Below are positions 6,746 to 64,000 of a DNA stretch of 64,000 nucleotides, in pieces. Each line of letters begins with the position of its first letter. Within the stretch, counting starts at the first letter, position 1. The position numbers and the translations under genes are program-made. Below the pieces are notes generated by a model, which saw only the letters and a list, made by a program, of their open reading frames with translations, was not told the DNA's origin and made no database searches. Source of the DNA: Octopus bimaculoides (Eukaryota); contig NC_068987.1 in NCBI RefSeq assembly GCF_001194135.2, forward strand, positions 13,213,980 through 13,277,979, in the 5' to 3' direction.

Positions 6746-6866
6746 AAACCACACTGTGTATATGTGTATGTATGTGTATGTAAGTATATGTATGTATGAG
6801 TATACACATACATTCACACACAAATACATACATACACAAAAAAATACATAAACATAAACAAATCAG

Positions 6867-7785: not shown

Positions 7786-9588
7786 ATGCCCCCGGACAGT
7801 CAACCTTGGCAGAATGTGAAGACAGGCAAAATACCATTCAGCATGTTGCCCGATGTACTAACAGTTCGGCCAACTTTCCGTCTTTGAACTGGTAATAACA
7901 TTGCAATTAGTACCATAGATGTATGGCGGGCCAAGCTATCCTACATACAACAAAGGGTTAGATGTTATTTGAGCATTAACAGCAGTAGTTAAATATATTT
8001 AGTTTGATTTTTAGCTGAGCAGCGTTTGCCATTCCTAATTGTGATGAATTTTTTGTTATCACGTAGAATATGATAACAGTAACATAATGTATTTGCTTTG
8101 TACACAATTGCAAACAGGTTGGTCTTATCACTTTCGTATATCACAACTTTGTGGTTATTTGTTAGTTCCTGCAGAGCGAGTTTAAAATTCTTGTTAAGTG
8201 CAATATTGTTGCAGTTATATCTATTTGGTTTTCATGAGTAAACCTGAAATCAGGTGGATGTGACTCAAGCTTCTTAGCCACACAGCTATGTGCTTGTTCA
8301 CATATATGTTTGTGTGTGTATATATATATATTTGTGTCCTTTTAGTCAACAGACACCTTTTGTTATTCTTGTTTGTATGTGTAATCATATAACATTTTCT
8401 CCATTTTCTCGTTTTTTTTTTGTTTTTTTTTTTTCCGTGTTGGTGCACATATTCACTTACTTTCTTCCAAAAATTTAATGCCTTTAGCTTAGATTTTTGG
8501 GGGTCTACCAATTTTGAACAGACTCAGGTGTAACAGGCCGAAACTGTAATGATGACCGGAAGCTTGACTGATGACTAGAAAACCACAAATGTTCCGTCCT
8601 GGTTTTCCTGTCCATCTTTGTATCGTCCATCTGTCCATATGTTTTTATTGTCATCTGTTACATTCTTGTTCTGGTTTTATATATATATATATATATATAT
8701 NNNNNNNNNNNNNNNNNNNNNNNNNNNNNNNNNNNNNNNNNNNNNNNNNNNNNNNNNNNNNNNNNNNNNNNNNNNNNNNNNNNNNNNNNNNNNNNNNNNN
8801 NNNNNNNNNNNNNNNNNNNNNNNNNNNNNNNNNNNNNNNNNNNNNNNNNNNNNNNNNNNNNNNNNNNNNNNNNNNNNNNNNNNNNNNNNNNNNNNNNNNN
8901 NNNNNNNNNNNNNNNNNNNNNNNNNNNNNNNNNNNNNNNNNNNNNNNNNNNNNNNNNNNNNNNNNNNNNNNNNNNNNNNNNNNNNNNNNNNNNNNNNNNN
9001 NNNNNNNNNNNNNNNNNNNNNNNNNNNNNNNNNNNNNNNNNNNNNNNNNNNNNNNNNNNNNNNNNNNNNNNNNNNNNNNNNNNNNNTATATATATATATA
9101 TATATGCATATAAAGAAGCCAGAATATGGAGGAATATCGATGAACAACAATTGACTTACATCAATTATTACTTATTAATTCAATACAAATAGACTACATC
9201 CCATCTAACAACTGTTTCTGCTTCCAGTGTTGTATGGTATTGTCATTGACATGCTAAAATATTTACCTATAATTTATGAGCATAGTATGCTGATATACCC
9301 ATGGTTAAACATAGATAATATACCGGTAGTGTAATGGTACTTCTATCCCTTAAACGGCTGTTTTAACCTCTAACTCAGCTAACCTTTGGCGTTTGGAAGG
9401 GCATCCAACTGTAGAAACTTTGCCAGATCAGATTGGAGACTGGTGACGAGCACAACAAAGACGATGATGACAACAACCCCAACAATGATGATGATGATGA
9501 CAACGACCACAACAAGGATGATGATGATGAGATGCACATGAACCTGGACAACAATTTTTTTGTTTATCTTATTTAGCAAGATATTTAA

Positions 9589-9799: not shown

Positions 9800-11695
9800 T
9801 TAATGACTGAGAGAGCACAATGGTTATATAAATAATCTATGCTTTTGACTTCCGTGTCTCTTGTGAAATACACAGAACTGGAAAATTGGGAAGCCTAGAC
9901 ATTCCCCTACCCCTACCCCTACCCCCCACCATCCCACTGCCTGCAATTATTTCATTTATTTATTTGTCTGTCTGTCACGGATGAAAGGGCAGCACTCCTG
10001 ACCCCNNNNNNNNNNNNNNNNNNNNNNNNNNNNNNNNNNNNNNNNNNNNNNNNNNNNNNNNNNNNNNNNNNNNNNNNNNNNNNNNNNNNNNNNNNNNNNN
10101 NNNNNNNNNNNNNNNNNNNNNNNNNNNNNNNNNNNNNNNNNNNNNNNNNNNNNNNNNNNNNNNNNNNNNNNNNNNNNNNNNNNNNNNNNNNNNNNNNNNN
10201 NNNNNNNNNNNNNNNNNNNNNNNNNNNNNNNNNNNNNNNNNNNNNNNNNNNNNNNNNNNNNNNNNNNNNNNNNNNNNNNNNNNNNNNNNNNNNNNNNNNN
10301 NNNNNNNNNNNNNNNNNNNNNNNNNNNNNNNNNNNNNNNNNNNNNNNNNNNNNNNNNNNNNNNNNNNNNNNNNNNNNNNNNNNNNNNNNNNNNNNNNNNN
10401 NNNNNNNNNNNNNNNNNNNNNNNNNNNNNNNNNNNNNNNNNNNNNNNNNNNNNNNNNNNNNNNNNNNNNNNNNNNNNNNNNNNNNNNNNNNNNNNNNNNN
10501 NNNNNNNNNNNNNNNNNNNNNNNNNNNNNNNNNNNNNNNNNNNNNNNNNNNNNNNNNNNNNNNNNNNNNNNNNNNNNNNNNNNNNNNNNNNNNNNNNNNN
10601 NNNNNNNNNNNNNNNNNNNNNNNNNNNNNNNNNNNNNNNNNNNNNNNNNNNNNNNNNNNNNNNNNNNNNNNNNNNNNNNNNNNNNNNNNNNNNNNNNNNN
10701 NNNNNNNNNNNNNNNNNNNNNNNNNNNNNNNNNNNNNNNNNNNNNNNNNNNNNNNNNNNNNNNNNNNNNNNNNNNNNNNNNNNNNNNNNNNNNNNNNNNN
10801 NNNNNNNNNNNNNNNNNNNNNNNNNNNNNNNNNNNNNNNNNNNNNNNNNNNNNNNNNNNNNATATATATATATATATATATATATAGTGTGTGTGTGTGT
10901 GTGCAAGTATGTATGCACAACCAGAAGGGGAAAGGTCTTTTCTCACTCCCCCCTCATTCTCACTCTCTCTCTCTTGATTATTCCTTCATGACTCCAACAA
11001 GGCTATCAGGTTATGATATTTTCATAATGTCCCTTATTATCTTTCCATACTTCCTACCTAATATCTGCCATTGTTCTTTGTACTGTCTAATTCATCTATG
11101 TGTTGACGCTGGTGGTGCTGGTGGAGGCAACGGTGTCTGCAGCAGCAACAACACTAGTGGAAGCAGCAGGGGCTAGTTACTGGCAGAAATGTTGTGTAAT
11201 CAACAGAACAATTATACATAGAGTAAAATAATTTTAGATATTTTTTTTATCGCTGGCTTCCATCCCTACCTTGTTTTCTTAAAAGCAAATAAAAACGAAA
11301 AGACCTTTACAAAAATACATTCTTTTTTCATTTTATCTAGTTTCAGCTCATGAGCTGTGACCATGCTGNNNNNNNNNNNNNNNNNNNNNNNNNNNNNNNN
11401 NNNNNNNNNNNNNNNNNNNNNNNNNNNNNNNNNNNNNNNNNNNNNNNNNNNNNNNNNNNNNNNNNNNNNNNNNNNNNNNNNNNNNNNNNNNNNNNNNNNN
11501 NNNNNNNNNNNNNNNNNNNNNNNNNNNNNNNNNNNNNNNNNNNNNNNNNNNNNNNNNNNNNNNNNNNNNNNNNNNNNNNNNNNNNNNNNNNNNNNNNNNN
11601 NNNNNNNNNNNNNNNNNNNNNNNNNNNNNNNNNNNNNNNNNNNNNNNNNNNNNNNNNNNNNNNNNNNNNNNNNNNNNNNNNNNNNNNNNNNNNNN

Positions 11696-11866
11696 AAACA
11701 CACACACACACAATAGGCTTTCTCACAGTTTCCATCTCACAGGGCTTTGGTTGGTCCAAGGCTGTAGTAGAAGACACTTGCACAAAGTGCCATACAGTGG
11801 TGGGACTGAACCCAAAACCATATGGTTGCAAAGCAAACTTCTTAACCACACAGCGTGCCTGCGCCT
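11696..11866 (-). mobile_element. SINE A head
   Basis: Similarity to A copies; abuts a gap. Confidence 0.8.
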
Positions 11867-22784: not shown

Positions 22785-23460
22785 TACACATGTACTATAG
22801 TTCTTTTGAGATCTCAGAAAATTTTTTCTGAATCTTCTGATTCTTTTAATGTGCTGGTTTCCTGGTATTAAATTGATATTAATTAATATCAAATTTTTTA
22901 CCATATTATGTTAATTATATATATATATATATATNNNNNNNNNNNNNNNNNNNNNNNNNNNNNNNNNNNNNNNNNNNNNNNNNNNNNNNNNNNNNNNNNN
23001 NNNNNNNNNNNNNNNNNNNNNNNNNNNNNNNNNNNNNNNNNNNNNNNNNNNNNNNNNNNNNNNNNNNNNNNNNNNNNNNNNNNNNNNNNNNNNNNNNNNN
23101 NNNNNNNNNNNNNNNNNNNNNNNNNNNNNNNNNNNNNNNNNNNNNNNNNNNNNNNNNNNNNNNNNNNNNNNNNNNNNNNNNNNNNNNNNNNNNNNNNNNN
23201 NNNNNNNNNNNNNNNNNNNNNNNNNNNNNNNNNNNNNNNNNNNNNNNNNNNNNNNNNNNNNNNNNNNNNNNNNNNNNNNNNNNNNNNNNNNNATGTGTGT
23301 GTGTGTGTATGTATATATGAGCATATGTATGAACATATGTGTGTGTGTATACGTATATATATATATATACATATGTATGTATATGCATATGTATGTGTGT
23401 ATATGCATATATGTGTGTGTGTATATGCATGTATATGTATGTGTGTGTGTATACGTGTGC

Positions 23461-23499
<39 letters not shown>

Positions 23500-24384
23500 T
23501 GTGTGTGTGTATAAATGTGTGTATGTATATATAGTACATAAATGTGTCTGTGTTTCTATTTGTCCAACTTCATTAATTGACTACCGGTGTTAGTTTGTTT
23601 ACATCCTCATAACTTAGCAAGTCAGCAAAAGAGACAAATAGAATGTGTACCAAGCTGAAAAAAATGAAAAGTAGTGTGTTCAATTTGATTGTCTAAACCC
23701 TTCAAGGTAACACCCCAATGTTTGCTAAAGCAGACCCTTTGAGTTGCACATACAGCCTATATCGCAGGCTTCTACATAGTCTCCATCTGACCAATTTCAC
23801 TCATGGAACTTGGTTTAACCTGAGGCTATAATAAGACACTTGTTAAAAGTTTCTTGCTATGGAATTGAACCCAGCATCTCAAGGTAGCTAAGCAAACTTC
23901 TTAACCACTAGGCCATGCATGCACACACGCACACAGACACACACACACACACACACTGACACTCTCACACACATGCTCAACCAAATCTGCAAAGACAGTA
24001 TGTGTGTATGCGTGTGTGTGTGTGTGTGTGTGTGTGCCCATGCGCATGCGTGCATGCACCTGCACACGTGCACCCCCCACACGTCTGTGCAGAAATGCAA
24101 AAGTAACTGAATTGGGCTTCTTACACATATTAACCGCACCCATTCATTCTACAATGAAGAGATAACAATGCACACTCAACATGAATAGCCTAATCGCATT
24201 CATGCACACACCCTCACACACATGCAAACACGCTCTCACGCAAACACACACACACACACACACACCATTCAAAATAGTGACTCAAAATGAAAGATTTTAT
24301 AAAGTCTTCATATCAATTATTACTGGATTCGTTTTCCAGAAGAATATTTTACAAGGAAAAGTTTAAATTTCAGTTGTAAATGTA

Positions 24385-25497: not shown

Positions 25498-26029
25498 TTT
25501 TCATTCATCCATTTCATTAGATGCACTTTTGTACAATATCCAGTTGTCTTTTTGATTCACTTAATATATCACTGAAGTTCATTCATCTCCAATTTCAGCA
25601 GGTCATCTGCACCCACTTCTTTACATATCCCTGCCATATGTTACTTTCTTCACCCNNNNNNNNNNNNNNNNNNNNNNNNNNNNNNNNNNNNNNNNNNNNN
25701 NNNNNNNNNNNNNNNNNNNNNNNNNNNNNNNNNNNNNNNNNNNNNNNNNNNNNNNNNNNNNNNNNNNNNNNNNNNNNNNNNNNNNNNNNNNNNNNNNNNN
25801 NNNNNNNNNNNNNNNNNNNNNNNNNNNNNNNNNNNNNNNNNNNNNNNNNNNNNNNNNNNNNNNNNNNNNNNNNNNNNNNNNNNNNNNNNNNNNNNNNNNN
25901 NNNNNNNNNNNNNNNNNNNNNNNNNNNNNNNNNNNNNNNNNNNNNNNNNNNNNNNNNNNNNNNNNNNNNNNNNNNNNNNNNNNNNNNNNNNNNNNNNNNN
26001 NNNNNNNNNNNNNNNNNNNNNNNNCCCAA

Positions 26030-29242: not shown

Positions 29243-29317
29243 GGCCAGCTATGAGACTCGAACTCACACCTCCGTGATTACGCGTCGTGGTGCTCTAACC
29301 GATTAAGCTAAACTACC
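29243..29317 (-). pseudogene. tRNA-like gene or pseudo-tRNA, Thr(CGT)-type loop
   Basis: D arm GCTT/GAGC, T arm GTGAG/CTCAT with TTCGA loop, intact A and B boxes, T6 terminator ~9 nt downstream; acceptor and anticodon stems carry mismatches and U33 is G. Confidence 0.7.
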
Positions 29318-35600: not shown

Positions 35601-38179
35601 TAATCCTGTTGATTTGAGGGTCATTATGCCAATAATAAACGCAGGCACTGGTTCTATTTCACTTCCTTTTTGTATTATTATTATTATCGTCAGTCAATTC
35701 GTTAGCTAATCAATTATTCAATTAATCACTCAGTCAATGAATTAATCAGCTAGATTTGTCAGCCCTTTTTTCACCTCATCAAAGACATTCCTTCTCTTAT
35801 CCAAGTTTCGTTTTAAGTAATCCAGCTGAAATTATGTTTCTCACAATAATTTTAATTTTTCTTACAATATTTTCAAACTAAGAAAAGTGAAATAATTCAT
35901 CATATTCCTGAATTGGCTGAAATGTAATGTAATAATAATAGTTCAGCCAAGTGCATAACTGTTATTTTAAGTTGCTTGAATTCTCATCTGCTGAAGACTA
36001 TGTATGTCTTTTCCTCTTTGCTCTGGTTTCTTTTCATTATTTAGATTGCTAAATAATTGTTCTGTCCCACTTTCATGTTTTTTCTCTTCGTTTCTCTTTT
36101 GCTGGTCTTTTTGCTTTAATGTAAAAAACCCCGTCAAAAGGCAAAGGCTTACTAAGTGTTTTGGTTTGAGTTTGTTCAACAGGAAATATATCCCCAGGTC
36201 TGAAATAATAAAATGGTGAAAGGCACTTGAGAGCTAGCCAAATTCTTCAAGGGCAAGTAATGAAGATAGATTAATTGAAGTCAGTTCCAGGTAGCAGAGC
36301 AGCAACTCTCAACAGAAAAAACATAAAAACATTTGGTTTCCAGGTGGACTCCATATCCGGTTCTCATTAATCTTTTTCACAACCAAAACATTTTGATGGG
36401 AGAAGAGGGACACTAAAAAAGGAATTCTAAATTCTCATATATTTTTATGTTATAATCTTTTATAGGAATCTACATTATCATTCTTTAAACTCTTTAAACC
36501 CATATTTTCGTTTCTTCTTCATTTGCCACATATCTTGTTTATTTTCATTTAGGTTTTGGAAGAGTTTTTGTTGTTGTTGTTCATTTTCATTGGCTGTCCC
36601 TTCATTTCAATCATAACATCTCTTTTCAAAGGAGTTATAAATGATTATTATTATTGTTATTATTATTGGAATTGTTGGCACACCGGGCAAAATGCTTATG
36701 AGTATTTTGTCCATCTTTACGTTCTGAGTTCAAATTCCGCCAAGGTTGACTTTGCCTTTCATCCTTTTGGGCCAATAAAATAAGTACTAGTTGAGCGCTG
36801 GGGGAGGGGTCAATGTAATTGACTAAAACTCCCTCAAAATTGCAGGCCGTGTGCCAAAATTTGAAATCATTGTTAATATTATTTAGTTGATAACCAACTG
36901 AAACTATGCATATTATCCAACCATCTCATTCTTGAGCTACCCCTAGATTTCTTGTTGGCTGGCTTGGCTTGAAGATCCAAACTAAAAGACAAAAAAAGAA
37001 AAAGGAATGGTAGGGTGAGATTTGAGGGTGATTTGGCTGCTATTTCTAACAAGGAAAATTACCACATACAGCCTTTGCCATTGACTCTCTAATTCTTAAT
37101 TATATCATTCTTATGTTTGTACACACCACTAAAGTTGTTATTTTAATTAAAATTCCTTAGCTTTCATTACATTAAGTACACTAGCGCCCTCTTTGCTATT
37201 AAAGATACACAGGTGTTACACCTTACCAGGAATGCTTCATCCCAAGCCATAGAGGCTTTGAAAATAACCAAGCCATCTCCAATGATGATGATGATGATGA
37301 TGATGATGATCAGGAGTTAGCAGTTTTGTAGCTTTTATCTTTTACTTTTTACTTGTTTCATCATTGGACTATGGCCAAGCTGGGGCACCACCTTAAATGG
37401 TCTTAGTCAAACAAATCAACTCCAGTGCTTCTGACTTTTTTTTTTTTTTTAAGTTTGCTGCTTATACTATCGAATCATTTTATTGCTGAACTTGTAAGTT
37501 ACAGGGACATAAACAAACCAACATCAGTCGTCAAGCAGTAAGGAGACAAGTCCAAAGACACACACATATAAAGATGGTTTTATACATGCACACACACACT
37601 GAGCTTCCACACAGTTTCCATCTACAGGCATTGGTCAATCCAAGGTTTTAGTAGAAAACACTTGCCCAAGGTGCTATACACTGAAACTGAACCCCAAACC
37701 ACGTAGCTGCAAAGCAAGTTTTTTAACCACACAGCCACCCTGAACCTATGTATGTATCCAATGTAGTGTGAACTCAACAGCTAGACAACAACTTTCAGCT
37801 ACATTTGTATTATGATAAGCTCAACCTCTATAAAAATACATCATAGATGAGTTTTTATCTAGCATTAGCTTATCACTGGTTATCATCTTCAGTGTCTTGA
37901 CTTGTGTTTCAATATCTAAAATAGAGTTTATGTATTTGAATTCACATATAGACCTCAGTATCTCTTAACTTTTTAACAAAAGGGGATTCTTTACTTAAAG
38001 CTCATCAGTCGTAATAACCACAACTGATATGTATGTATGTATGTATGTATGTACGTATGTACGTACGTACGTACGTATGTACGTACGTACGTACGTATGT
38101 ATGCATGCATGCTCAAAAAGTATCAGAACTGGTTTTATAAAAAGAAAACTACTATACATAACAATTTAGCATACATATT

Positions 38180-44611: not shown

Positions 44612-45505
44612 CATACATAATAGATATACATGCATTTACACACACAAGTGTGTGTGCGTGTAATTACTGTTGGTGTGTCACTCGTGTATAGGCACGCTGA
44701 AACACCCAACACACACATAATCATTTTCATGTTGTCATATTTTTTATTTGGCATGGGCAGGTGGGAGAGGCAGCAGCATCTCTGCCTGAAGAATCTCTTC
44801 CCTGCACCGCCCCCCCTCCCCGTCTGCTTCTAAGCTACACACTTCAAAACAAGTCTGCTACTGCTAGTGTTTGGTTCCAACCGAGTATTTCTTCCCATCA
44901 GACACTACACAATCTGCAATCACCCACTGTTGCTTCAACCGAGGCCCTTCCAGTCTTTTTTTTTTTTGTGAACCCAACTCTATATACACAGCGAGGTCCC
45001 CCCTGTAAAACCCTACATGCTTGTCTTCATTTGGTACCTGTTCTTGTTTCTGGTTGCATTTGTGTTTGTCTACATATGGTTGCACCCTGGACAGCAGCTG
45101 CACTTGGTAGGAAAAAAATATTCTTTTGTTACTTTTAACTGTTTGTATTTACCTTTNNNNNNNNNNNNNNNNNNNNNNNNNNNNNNNNNNNNNNNNNNNN
45201 NNNNNNNNNNNNNNNNNNNNNNNNNNNNNNNNNNNNNNNNNNNNNNNNNNNNNNNNNNNNNNNNNNNNNNNNNNNNNNNNNNNNNNNNNNNNNNNNNNNN
45301 NNNNNNNNNNNNNNNNNNNNNNNNNNNNNNNNNNNNNNNNNNNNNNNNNNNNNNNNNNNNNNNNNNNNNNNNNNNNNNNNNNNNNNNNNNNNNNNNNNNN
45401 NNNNNNNNNNNNNNNNNNNNNNNNNNNNNNNNNNNNNNNNNNNNNNNNNNNNNNNNNNNNNNNNNNNNNNNNNNNNNNNNNNNNNNNNNNNNNNNNNNNN
45501 NNNNN

Positions 45506-45564
<59 letters not shown>

Positions 45565-47670: not shown

Positions 47671-48135
47671 GTGTGTGTGTGTGTGAATAATAGACTTCTC
47701 ATATCTGTGTCTCTGTCAAATTTAAAGACAGTCTGGAATAGATTGGGGTATGTTGAAGGAAAAAGAAAAAGATCAAACACCTCATTATTTACCTCTGCCA
47801 GTGGTGCTGTTTTTTATAATGAAGGAACTGAGCCGGTAGAAACGGTAGGATGAATGCCAAAATAAATACATACTATACTTCCCTTTCCATCAAACACCCC
47901 TTTCCACATTTTTTTTTAAGTAGAGAGGCCCTGTGGGAAGGAGGCAGAGTGGGGGTAACGGTTGAGATAAGTATACCAGTGATACACTGAGGTTCATTCA
48001 GTTGTTTCTTGTGTCAATGTATACATAGTCTGTGAGTTCTTTTTTCTAACAAACACATGTATATGTAAATATAAATAAATACATATATAGATTTATGTAT
48101 ATACATATATGTATGTACGTGTGCATGTGTGTATG

Positions 48136-48170
<35 letters not shown>

Positions 48171-48232
48171 ATGTATGTATGCATACATATATACACAAAC
48201 ATGCATATATGTAAGTATACTTGCATACATAA

Positions 48233-48275
<43 letters not shown>

Positions 48276-49344
48276 CATACATATACGCATACATGTATGT
48301 ATTCATACATATATACAAACATGTATATATATGCAGACCTGGTGCGGCCTCCTGGCTTCCCAGACCCCAGTCAAACCATCCAATCCATGCCAGCATGGAA
48401 GACGAACGTTAAATGATGATGATGATATATGTATATATATATATATACATACAGTCAGGTGCGTATGCATGCACACACACACACACACACACATATGTAC
48501 ATAATTTCAAGTAAGTGAAAATTGTTTGTCATGCGTCATTCATAACTCCTTGAGATAGTTTTATACATACTTGTGTCTGTGTGCATGTGTGTATAATGTA
48601 TACTTATGTATGCATATACCTATATGTGTGTGTGTCTATGAATGTATATTTGTGCTTGCACATATGTATACATACATACATACATGCATGTTTGTGTGTG
48701 TGTATACAGAGTAGTAAAGAAAATGTCTATGCATTGTCATTAATTATTTTATACAATAAAATAAAGTGAGTCAATAACTTTATGTACTTTGGACAGAAAT
48801 CTCCACCTCCTACAAGTAAAACATATTAACTATGAAGGATGTAGAAATAGATATCACATCATTCATGCCTTTCCTAATGGCTTCACTTAGTAAATAACAA
48901 CCAAATCTAATAGTCACCCACTTCCTTTGCTTATATTATGAACCAACACTCTACACAAATCACTTTTAGACGTGTGTAGTATATGTTCACTGTCTTCACA
49001 ACCCTTAAAAAACAGGGGTGGGAGTTCTTCTACTCTTTGGTATTTCTTAGAAAGGTCTGTCTAATTAGCTATTGTGTTGGTATCCCTATTTTTATCTAAC
49101 AGCTAACAGATTGCTGAAGTTGAAACAACTGTGAAACAGCTGCTTTCTCTCTAAGTGGGCTATTACAGCCATGTCTTTTATTGGCATGATTCTACTTCGT
49201 TATAGTCACTTCTCTTACTTACCCATCGGGAAGTTGGTTCCATATACATATGATTAGGGATGTGTGTGTGTCTGTATGTTAATTTTTTTAAGTCAAATTA
49301 TATATAAAAACAATTTAACATTAAACTAAAGAATTACTCAATAC

Positions 49345-53625: not shown

Positions 53626-54744
53626 GGTTGAAAAGATATTCTGGGGAGGAAAAAATGGCACAAAATGATGGGGAATGAATATGGTGATAATGATGTATGG
53701 ACGTTTTGTGTGTGTGGATGTGTGCNNNNNNNNNNNNNNNNNNNNNNNNNNNNNNNNNNNNNNNNNNNNNNNNNNNNNNNNNNNNNNNNNNNNNNNNNNN
53801 NNNNNNNNNNNNNNNNNNNNNNNNNNNNNNNNNNNNNNNNNNNNNNNNNNNNNNNNNNNNNNNNNNNNNNNNNNNNNNNNNNNNNNNNNNNNNNNNNNNN
53901 NNNNNNNNNNNNNNNNNNNNNNNNNNNNNNNNNNNNNNNNNNNNNNNNNNNNNNNNNNNNNNNNNNNNNNNNNNNNNNNNNNNNNNNNNNNNNNNNNNNN
54001 NNNNNNNNNNNNNNNNNNNNNNNNNNNNNNNNNNNNNNNNNNNNNNNNNNNNNNNNNNNNNNNNNNNNNNNNNNNNNNNNNNNNNNNNNNNNNNNNNNNN
54101 NNNNNNNNNNNNNNNNNNNNNNNNNNNNNNNNNNNNNNNNNNNNNNNNNNNNNNNNNNNNNNNNNNNNNNNNNNNNNNNNNNNNNNNNNNNNNNNNNNNN
54201 NNNNNNNNNNNNNNNNNNNNNNNNNNNNNNNNNNNNNNNNNNNNNNNNNNNNNNNNNNNNNNNNNNNNNNNNNNNNNNNNNNNNATATATATGGTAATGT
54301 TCCCCACAGTTTCCATCTACCAAAATCAATCACATGGCATTGTTCACCTGGGGTTATTATAGGAGACAGTTGCCTAAGGTACCACTATGTGGCACCTTAA
54401 GGACTGAACTTAAAACTCCTTGGTTACAAAACAAGATTCTTTACCACAAATCCATTATCTAATGATAATTGATATGTAATTTTGCAAAACCAAGAGAAAC
54501 TTTTTCATTATCGTAGTAAAAAGGAAGCCAGATAGTGTCTGTGTGTGGGGGGGGGGGCATTAATTAATATGTACCAGAGGGGTGGAGTTGCTGTTGATGA
54601 TATGTTATGTAAACAGACGACTGTTGGTAGTTGTGCGATAGTGGGTGATACAATAATAATGGGACGACAGCAAGAAATGCTGAGCTCAGATCTGAAAAAT
54701 CCCAATTTCATTTATTTATTCATTTTACTGCATACATGGTGCAG

Positions 54745-62575: not shown

Positions 62576-63513
62576 GCTTCCATCTACCAAATCCTTTCAC
62601 AAGGCTTTCTCAACCCAGGGCTATAGTGGAAAACATTTTCTTAAGGAGCCATGCAGTGGGGGAGCCTGAAACCAATCAGCCACCTCTGCACCTTCAACCA
62701 TATCCAGTATAAAATATGTATTGGTTATATTCTAAGACAGACATGGGTGACCTTTTCTGAGAAGCGGGCCAAATGAGACATGGTTCGCCATCAGGTAGGC
62801 CACACTACTTGTAAAAAAATTCAAGTCAACTTTTCATCAGGCATGCCATTCAGAAAGCCCCACAGGCTACAGATTGCCCATGGCTGGTCCAGGATCAGAT
62901 TAATGATCTTAAAACTTTTCACTGCGATAAAGATCACAAAAACTAGTTTGTATTAGAATCTTGTTATTTACAATTGGCTTCGTGATTGGAGATAATTTTA
63001 ATGTATGGATTACAATTTTTAAAAAATGATTTTCTTTTATCAATTTCATCCAGTCATTTTAGATATTAAGACTACAGATATCACTAGAAGCGAGCCACAA
63101 AAAGCTAATCCCTACCACCACTAAATTTTTAATCCTTCCACATAGAAAATGATTAAGCCTTAATCTTATACACAAATGATTTAGTATCTATTTTAATTAT
63201 ATGTTATTAATCATTTCTTTGTTGCATTTTTTAATAGATTTCTTTCACAATATAAATACACACACACACACACACATTTATTTATTTATTTATTTATGTG
63301 TTTCAGTCATTAGACTGTGACCATGCTGGGGCACTGCCTTGAAGAATTTTTAGTCAAGTGTCTCAACCCCTGTACTTATTTTTATAAGCCTGGTACTTAT
63401 TCTGTCAGACTCTTTTGCTGAACCACTAAGTTACAGGGACGTAAATACACTAACACCAGTTGTCAAGCAGCAGTGAGGAGATAAACATAGACACAAACAC
63501 ACACACGTATAAT

Positions 63514-63787
63514 TACCAACAGGGCAAATTTTAGCCATTTCTCCACAGACTGAAAAATGATGAACAACCTTAATCGATTTCCGAACCTTATTGGGTTCTC
63601 ATCAGAGGCATCCACATCATTTTGACAGTCTCCAGAGAAACAAACAACCAAACTGTTTATATACTCAACAAATGCAGCAGTCATTCTATGAAGGAGTCCC
63701 TAATTTGCATACCGAAAGTGTTTAACACTCTATAGATACCAGTGGCCTGTCAACAGGAATCTTAGTCCACATAGTATCAAGGTATGA
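63514..63787 (-). mobile_element. Hammerhead-containing small element (retrozyme-like)
   Basis: 274 bp of non-SINE sequence between TATAAT repeats (63508-63513, 63788-63793), inside the SINE internal microsatellite. Confidence 0.65.
63538..63640 (-). ncRNA. Type I hammerhead ribozyme motif with A13G core variant
   Basis: Minus strand GCCU-CUGAUGA-GAACC-CAAUAA-GGUUC-GGA-AAUCGAUU-A-AGGU; stem I continues AAAAUGAUG/CAUCAUUUU, AGACUG/CAGUCU, UUUCUCU/GGAGAAA. Confidence 0.8.
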
Positions 63788-64000
63788 TATAATATACATA
63801 TATATATGATAGGCTTCTTTCAGTTTCCATCTACCAGATCCACTCAAGGCTTTGGTCGGTCTGGGACTATAGTAGAAGATGCTTGCTCAAGGTGTCACAC
63901 AGTAGGATTGAATCTGGAACTATGTGGTTGGGAAGCAGTCTTTTGTTTTTTCTTTTTTAAAGCAAATTTTAAAACCTCGCCACAAAGTCTCCACTCACAC

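Follow-up and report, generated by a model that had tools for sequence, protein, structure and literature searches.

Animals in which hammerhead retrozymes are known include corals, mussels and amphibians, among many others. The metazoan non-LTR retrozymes of coral, mussel and axolotl are built from units of 170-400 nt that are low in G+C, highly self-paired as RNA, carry a type I hammerhead and lie head to tail (PMC7229834). A 2-bp stem closed off with a tetraloop of palindromic sequence is typical of metazoan type I hammerheads, which are active as a dimer with a second copy, and a G10.1-C11.1 pair together with a palindromic helix III are signs of a genuine metazoan hammerhead (PMC4209133). 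Penelope-like elements are reported to favour (TA)n and (CA)n targets (PMC8557442), and a 2026 preprint argues that their terminal repeats (pLTRs) gave rise to animal retrozymes. Our literature search found no description of a hammerhead retrozyme in octopus; the giant squid genome paper gives just a count, 235 Rfam hammerhead matches.

Here we describe a short inserted segment in a 64,000-nucleotide stretch of the Octopus bimaculoides genome, which we refer to as the window. We conclude, with a probability of about 0.78, that the segment is one copy, inactivated by mutation, of a non-autonomous octopus retroelement family of about 280 nt with a type I hammerhead, in other words a non-LTR 'retrozyme'. 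The original prediction for this DNA had read it as a dispersed, probably inactivated copy of an octopus retrozyme family. The recovery of a family, a tandem dimer, a core mutation private to this copy and one relative with an intact core upholds that reading.

Results

The segment is an insertion in a SINE

The features of the locus are listed below, from the left part of the interrupted SINE to its right part.

63293-63507, plus strand: left part of the host SINE, ending in (CA)n (from window self-comparison and SINE alignment)
63508-63513: TATAAT (ATTATA on the minus strand), on the element's 3' side; the unit's last 6 nt or a target repeat
63514-63787, minus strand: inserted element of 274 bp, which with one flanking ATTATA makes one 280-nt repeat unit
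63514-63536, minus strand: 3' tail GGCUAAAAUUUGCCCUGUUGGUA, the most conserved part of the family
63537-63641, minus strand: hammerhead domain, with an extended helix I (4+9+6+9 bp) around the core, helix II and helix III
63571-63579, minus strand: helix III palindrome AAUCGAUU (63579-63572) and H17 = A (63571), read directly
63580-63582, minus strand: core positions 12-14, GGA, with A13G at 63581, read directly
63583-63598, minus strand: helix II, GAACC (63598-63594) with GGUUC (63587-63583), including G10.1-C11.1, read directly
63593-63588, minus strand: loop CAAUAA closed by helix II, read directly
63599-63605, minus strand: core C3-A9, CUGAUGA, from direct reading and a descriptor match
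63642-63787, minus strand: 5' domain of the unit, with several hairpins in its fold and no recognised motif; 75% identical to both units of a related dimer (L003a and L003b)
63788-63793: second TATAAT, on the element's 5' side
63794-63944, plus strand: right part of the host SINE, starting in (TA)n (from window self-comparison and SINE alignment)

The segment is absent from five uninterrupted copies of the host SINE in the window, aligned across the breakpoint. The insertion point lies between the (CA)n and the (TA)n of the SINE's internal microsatellite. These five intact copies confirm the earlier statement that the segment interrupts a SINE and arrived by insertion. In the window, copies or fragments of the host SINE number at least 20. 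The window also holds 3,600 N in several gaps, mostly bordered by microsatellites (for example at about 8700-9090, 10000-10880, 11370-11700, 22930-23290, 25660-26020, 45160-45560 and 53700-54280).

A type I hammerhead with one core substitution

Direct reading of the sequence gives a type I hammerhead layout on the minus strand, 63641-63537, and the earlier description of the motif agrees with it base by base, including the GGA and the palindrome. The CUGAUGA of the window copy follows the C3 U4 G5 A6 N7 G8 A9 rule, and its GGA breaks the G12 A13 A14 rule (PMC3088659). The core-adjacent rule of the same work holds: A15.1-U16.1 closes helix III, U2.1-A1.1 is paired, and so is 10.1-11.1. An alternative register, in which an extra G precedes GAA, was rejected on inspection because it breaks core-adjacent pairs in helices I and II. 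Two readings of AAUCGAUU are possible: a 2-bp stem closed by the palindromic tetraloop UCGA, or a palindrome over all 8 nt. The predicted cut falls between 63571 and 63570, after H17 = A.

Next to the core, helix I consists of the 4-bp GCCU/AGGU followed by an internal loop, UGGAU/UGUU. Beyond this loop the minimum-energy fold has helices of 9, 6 and 9 bp, so that helix I comes to 28 bp including G-U pairs. The layout given earlier for this stem is thus retained, and its total (about 26 bp, 4+9+6+7) has to be raised. A fold of 121 nt reaches -42.2 kcal/mol (z = -4.9), a value equalled by none of 200 shuffles. Over the whole element, the minus strand folds at -81.3 kcal/mol compared with -64.0 kcal/mol for the plus strand; the stronger minus-strand fold fits a minus-strand RNA with G-U pairs. 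Apart from A13G, the window hammerhead is the best kept of six copies, and every one of its helices is perfect.

Mutational work on the hammerhead core leads one to expect that A13G abolishes or greatly reduces cleavage. Judged from the sequence, A13G is probably inactivating in the window copy.

To place the motif against background, we scanned both strands of the 64 kb with our own type I descriptor (CUGANGA, GAA, A15.1-U16.1 and H17, with at least 4 bp in helix I, at least 4 bp in helix II and at least 2 bp in helix III), allowing at most one core mismatch. The only site matched was the element's hammerhead. The chance expectation, from 100 dinucleotide shuffles, is 0.07 matches per window, and the shuffles contained no match with zero mismatches. 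At 0.07 per 64 kb, the minimal motif alone would still match thousands of times by chance in a gigabase genome. Our case leans on the insertion, the relatives, the structure and the ends.

Relatives define a family of 280-nt units

The minus strand is open through the hammerhead, and its 62-aa translation was searched exhaustively against 1.84 billion representative proteins. Three matches, P0001 (E = 1.4e-15, in two stretches), P0003 and P0004, were genuine and represent translated copies of related elements; P0002, a WD40 protein, was discarded as a false match. An alignment-based protein search returned P0003 and P0005 only. Where the window copy reads R-F-G-N-R, the relatives read F-E-N-R or S-E-N-R, so their codon at positions 12-14 is GAA and not GGA. 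A word-indexed protein search with the minus-frame translation and a concatenated six-frame query for further copies each gave no match, and exact core-pattern scans of the metagenome and viral collections also gave none. Exact look-ups with the 73-aa reading frame of the window, and with ten of its other frames, were likewise empty. A conserved 20-mer had no match in the viral collection; its metagenome matches (L005-L007) align over just 20-24 nt and were set aside as chance.

P0004 clusters with XP_014774269.1 of Octopus bimaculoides, which leads to L004, 57 kb of chromosome CM046618.1. Three further sequences, L001, L002 and L003, are Logan contigs from runs SRR11869391, SRR11869394 and SRR11869384, respectively. 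Our sample of the family therefore consists of five recovered relatives (L001, L002, L003a, L003b and L004). The element occurs once in the 64-kb window, and the 57 kb of O. bimaculoides sequence in L004 holds no further copy.

Over the hammerhead domain, identity between copies is 71-89%, and the family consensus reads GCCU CUGAUGA GAGCC CAAUAA GGUUC GAA AAUnGAnU A AGGU. In the relatives, positions 12-14 are GAA or AAA. Position 13 is covered by four of them and is A in every case, and A13G is thus private to the window copy. The original prediction had anticipated other copies, tandem arrays and a consensus with GAA at positions 12-14. Each of these has now been found, in the five relatives, in the 280-bp period of the L003 dimer, and in the GAA consensus with A13 in four of four covering relatives.

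The copy in L004 (48255-48412) is 5'-truncated, keeps its 3' end and is 89-90% identical to the window copy. It lies between CA-rich and (TA)n sequence, beside a SINE. Its hammerhead (48309-48351) reads GCUU CUGAGGA GAACC CAGUAA GGUUC GAA AAUUGAUU C AGGU, agrees with the canonical descriptor at zero mismatches and follows the G12 A13 A14 rule. The last 56 residues of the predicted protein XP_014774269.1 are encoded by the SINE microsatellite and the first half of this retrozyme copy (L004 48168-48335). The gene model stops precisely at the point at which loop II has changed to CCA|GUAAGG, a sequence that resembles a 5' splice site. This tail is either an exonisation of the element or an annotation artefact.

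In L003 two units follow each other head to tail; the period is exactly 280 bp, and nothing coding separates them. This dimer is the sole array seen, and both of its cores are mutated; the window copy is a monomer. The two L003 units (720-1000 and 998-1281) are 61-66% identical to each other, and each is 71-81% identical to the window copy. Their low mutual identity implies that the array is very old or was built from unlike units.

L001 is a partial copy. At the end of that contig (1690-1708) the 3' tail runs straight into the 5' start of a SINE of the host type (TTGTTTCAGTCAT); here the SINE seems to have inserted beside or into the element, the reverse of the order in the window. In L002, about 105 nt of foreign sequence stand in place of helix II and loop II (119-221, Logan SRR11869394). 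This insert has an antisense match to eukaryotic 28S rRNA (LSU model 2660-2763, 49.9 bits, E = 6e-10), and may be either a chimera produced by template switching or an artefact of assembly.

The three insertions with visible flanks (window, L003 and L004) all lie in a TA-rich microsatellite adjoining SINE sequence. In the window and in L004 the site is the SINE-internal (CA)n/(TA)n tract; around L003 neither side is CA-rich (flank regions: L003 700-720 and 1260-1290; L004 48240-48260 and 48400-48480). The element and the SINE are not oriented to each other in the same way in the window and in L004. SINEs of the window and of L004 are up to 95% identical, the same range as among the window SINEs.

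Rfam models do not recognise the family

Rfam gave no hammerhead family in the whole window at the gathering threshold, none in a local 501-nt scan at E <= 10, and none among the best 150 of 174 matches in the whole-window E-value table. E-value scans of L001-L003 and of the region of the intact L004 copy returned no hammerhead at E <= 10 either (Hammerhead_1, HH9, HH10, II and 3). The Infernal/Rfam check that had been proposed for this motif was therefore negative for the window copy and even for the intact L004 copy. We believe that this result says more about the models' reach for such an architecture than about the motif itself. 'Near-perfect', as the motif had been called, is not how curated models see it.

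The sole Rfam match above its gathering score in the window is a tRNA at 29243-29317 on the minus strand (33.9 bits against a threshold of 29), which may be a gene or a SINE-related pseudogene. Dozens of sub-threshold matches to mir-297, mir-3149, mir-466 and mir-1277 fall on (CA)n/(TA)n tracts on both strands (for example at 48109-48179, 38037-38109, 23937-24035 and 6765-6837). We rejected these as microRNA genes and regard them as artefacts of microsatellite composition.

Structural support and the predicted dimer

Across five copies, 84.7% of cells in the hammerhead and helix I structure are standard pairs, compared with 37-51% in a control in which the partners were slid by 1-3 columns. 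G10.1-C11.1 is invariant in all five copies, and A15.1-U16.1 is invariant as well. Covariation among the five copies is not significant: the 2 compensatory pairs found were equalled by 166 of 500 shuffles, and covariation could hardly be demonstrated with just five decayed copies.

In ViennaRNA, the best fold of the monomer (-18.6 kcal/mol) is not a hammerhead, as the UGAU of the core pairs with the AUCG of helix III; in the hammerhead fold the monomer reaches -11.7 kcal/mol. When two molecules are folded together (ViennaRNA cofold), the best structure is a double hammerhead at -39.7 kcal/mol, compared with twice -18.6 kcal/mol for the monomers. In this predicted structure AAUCGAUU forms an 8-bp intermolecular helix III, the helices I pair in trans and both cores are free. 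G+C makes up 38% of the 280-nt unit as a whole. Folded as a circle, the unit reaches -75.5 kcal/mol (z = -3.5), and 66% of its bases are paired.

Unit ends and the 3' tail

The 3' tail is where the family is most alike: GGCTAAAATTTGCCCTGTT is 90-95% identical among the window copy, L003a, L003b and L004, compared with 61-89% elsewhere. We propose the tail GGCUAAAAUUUGCCCUGUU as a candidate recognition site of the mobilising reverse transcriptase. ARAGORN found no tRNA in 63300-64000, the local Rfam scan gave no tRNA match, and a search of the element for a B box gave none. A tRNA-derived SINE of the Sm-alpha type was rejected on the ARAGORN and B-box results.

The junction between the two L003 units reads ...CCCTGTTTATGATTATGCCATATGG..., which places ATTATR inside the unit. 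When the ends of the window element are joined through a single ATTATA, they reproduce the L003 unit junction with equal spacing. The original prediction had the element bounded by TATAAT repeats. Both repeats are present; as one of them belongs to the unit, however, 'target-site duplication' is not a safe label for them. The other TATAAT may be target sequence, microhomology or terminal redundancy.

L003b and L004 end in ...TTATACCATATGTT, 9-11 nt into the next unit, and none of the copies ends at the predicted cleavage site. Copies longer than one unit, one 5'-truncation and a common 3' end agree with target-primed reverse transcription from a template that is a multimer or a circle. The same features argue against copying of a linear cleaved monomer.

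Discussion

A model for the spread of the family

Based on the anatomy of the copies and on published retrozymes, we propose a model in which we infer the cleavage, the circular RNA and the identity of the mobilising enzyme. Head-to-tail copies would be transcribed, and two adjacent hammerheads would pair through AAUCGAUU; in the resulting double hammerhead, helix III would be 8 bp long. Cutting after H17 in each of the two would release a 280-nt monomer that a host tRNA ligase could circularise. A reverse transcriptase acting in trans would copy the circle, or a multimer, into nicked (TA)n DNA. The products would be copies of one unit plus a few bases, or 5'-truncated copies.

The mobilising enzyme would most likely come from a Penelope-like element and may recognise the 3' tail GGCUAAAAUUUGCCCUGUU. 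We consider Penelope-like elements the likeliest partner because of their (TA)n/(CA)n preference (PMC8557442) and the 2026 preprint on a pLTR origin. We found no Penelope-like reverse transcriptase, and linked none to the family.

As for the window copy, it is a molecular fossil, and no function is expected of it; we infer that A13G killed its activity. A bolder version of the model would have the family still active. Arrays of masters with intact cores, such as the one on CM046618.1, would give rise to transcripts that cleave themselves as double hammerheads and form 280-nt circular RNAs, and a Penelope-like enzyme would read the 3' tail and insert the element into the (TA)n of SINEs. The lineage would have gone undetected by Rfam and would sometimes have become part of host exons. 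We put this forward tentatively, as a possibility that we think is rather unlikely to hold in full.

Alternative explanations

The segment might not be a separate short element at all, but a solo or 5'-truncated pLTR of an autonomous Penelope-like element. The hammerhead near the insertion's 3' end, the 5'-truncation of the L004 copy, the (TA)n microsatellite target reported for Penelope-like elements and the preprint that derives animal retrozymes from pLTRs would all suit such an origin. On the other hand, the L003 units follow directly on one another at a 280-bp period, and between them lies no frame with reverse transcriptase and GIY-YIG domains. The window copy is exactly one unit, flanked by SINE, and there is no long gap-free reading frame near it in the window. 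Moreover, the octopus hammerhead has a helix III and a helix II of just 5 bp, whereas the 'minimal' hammerheads of Penelope-like elements have no helix III and a helix II of 7-8 bp. We therefore regard a pLTR as improbable. If these elements did spread as separate units, they could have done so as DNA, through unequal exchange or in the manner of a satellite, in which case the dispersed copies would not be products of retrotransposition. A tandem dimer does exist in L003, and the classic hammerheads of newt and schistosome were known first from satellite DNA. Single copies are nevertheless dispersed in SINE microsatellites at unrelated loci, one of them is 5'-truncated with its 3' end preserved, and copies end a few bases into the next unit, all of which leaves spread by DNA exchange with hardly any credibility.

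A more radical doubt is whether there was ever a ribozyme, since a hairpin-rich repeat of some other kind could resemble a hammerhead by chance. No Rfam hammerhead model matches, covariation is not significant, and about 0.07 one-mismatch matches per 64 kb amount to thousands in a gigabase genome. Against chance stand the relatives, which are more canonical than the window copy (A13 in four of four, and one perfect core), the invariant G10.1-C11.1, the palindromic helix III with a dimer fold that is a double hammerhead, and a unit size, tandem layout and composition that fit known retrozymes. Chance resemblance is thus very unlikely. At the opposite extreme, the window copy could still be functional, either because A13G is tolerated in the dimer or through another role such as a structured regulatory RNA. 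Its hammerhead is, save for A13G, the best preserved of the six, and rare natural core variants keep some activity (PMC3088659). It is, however, a lone monomer, the SINE around it is decayed and the 64 kb hold no partner copy, and the same work treats any core change as disqualifying and such matches as cryptic mutant hammerheads in repeats. We give a functional window copy almost no weight. An inactivated copy of a non-LTR retrozyme family remains our preferred reading.

Implications and comparison with known systems

As Rfam does not detect the family even when the core is perfect, annotation by covariance models counts too few of these elements. Three features of the family can be tested: its defined target in SINE microsatellites, its copies longer than one unit, and its sharply conserved 3' tail, which could identify the partner reverse transcriptase.

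The plant LTR retrozymes follow the same logic, as non-autonomous retroelements bounded by hammerheads and with circular RNA intermediates (PMC4918200). They differ in having type III hammerheads, LTRs, a primer binding site and a polypurine tract, whereas the octopus family has a type I hammerhead and no LTRs. Plant LTR retrozymes also make 4-bp target duplications, have about 700 nt between their ribozymes and are high in G+C (PMC4918200).

Sm-alpha of Schistosoma mansoni too is a dispersed, non-autonomous repeat of a few hundred nucleotides with a type I hammerhead. Its loop II, CAAAUA, resembles the octopus CAAUAA in that both are 6 nt long and face an internal loop of helix I. Sm-alpha is, however, tRNA-derived and SINE-like, while the octopus element has no tRNA-like sequence or B box.

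With the minimal hammerheads of Penelope-like elements (PMC4209133), the octopus family shares dependence on a dimer, residence in retroelement repeats and a preponderance of single decayed motifs. G10.1-C11.1, a palindromic 15.2-16.2 and a preference for microsatellite targets are likewise common to both. In the Penelope-like motifs helix III is missing and helix II is 7-8 bp long and contains a bulged base, and the motifs flank a gene for reverse transcriptase; the octopus family shows none of this.

Among the metazoan non-LTR retrozymes, the octopus family differs in sequence from the families of the Hammerhead_1 type and is missed by the Rfam hammerhead models. Its helix II has 5 bp rather than 4, and its helix I has 4 bp before the internal loop and 24 more bp after it. 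The window copy is further set apart as a monomer with a core mutation. In its basic plan the octopus unit is like these retrozymes, being 280 nt long, with 38% G+C, highly self-pairing and without LTRs (PMC7229834). Two of its copies, in L003, lie head to tail, and the family has a short palindromic helix III, which implies dimer-dependent cleavage.
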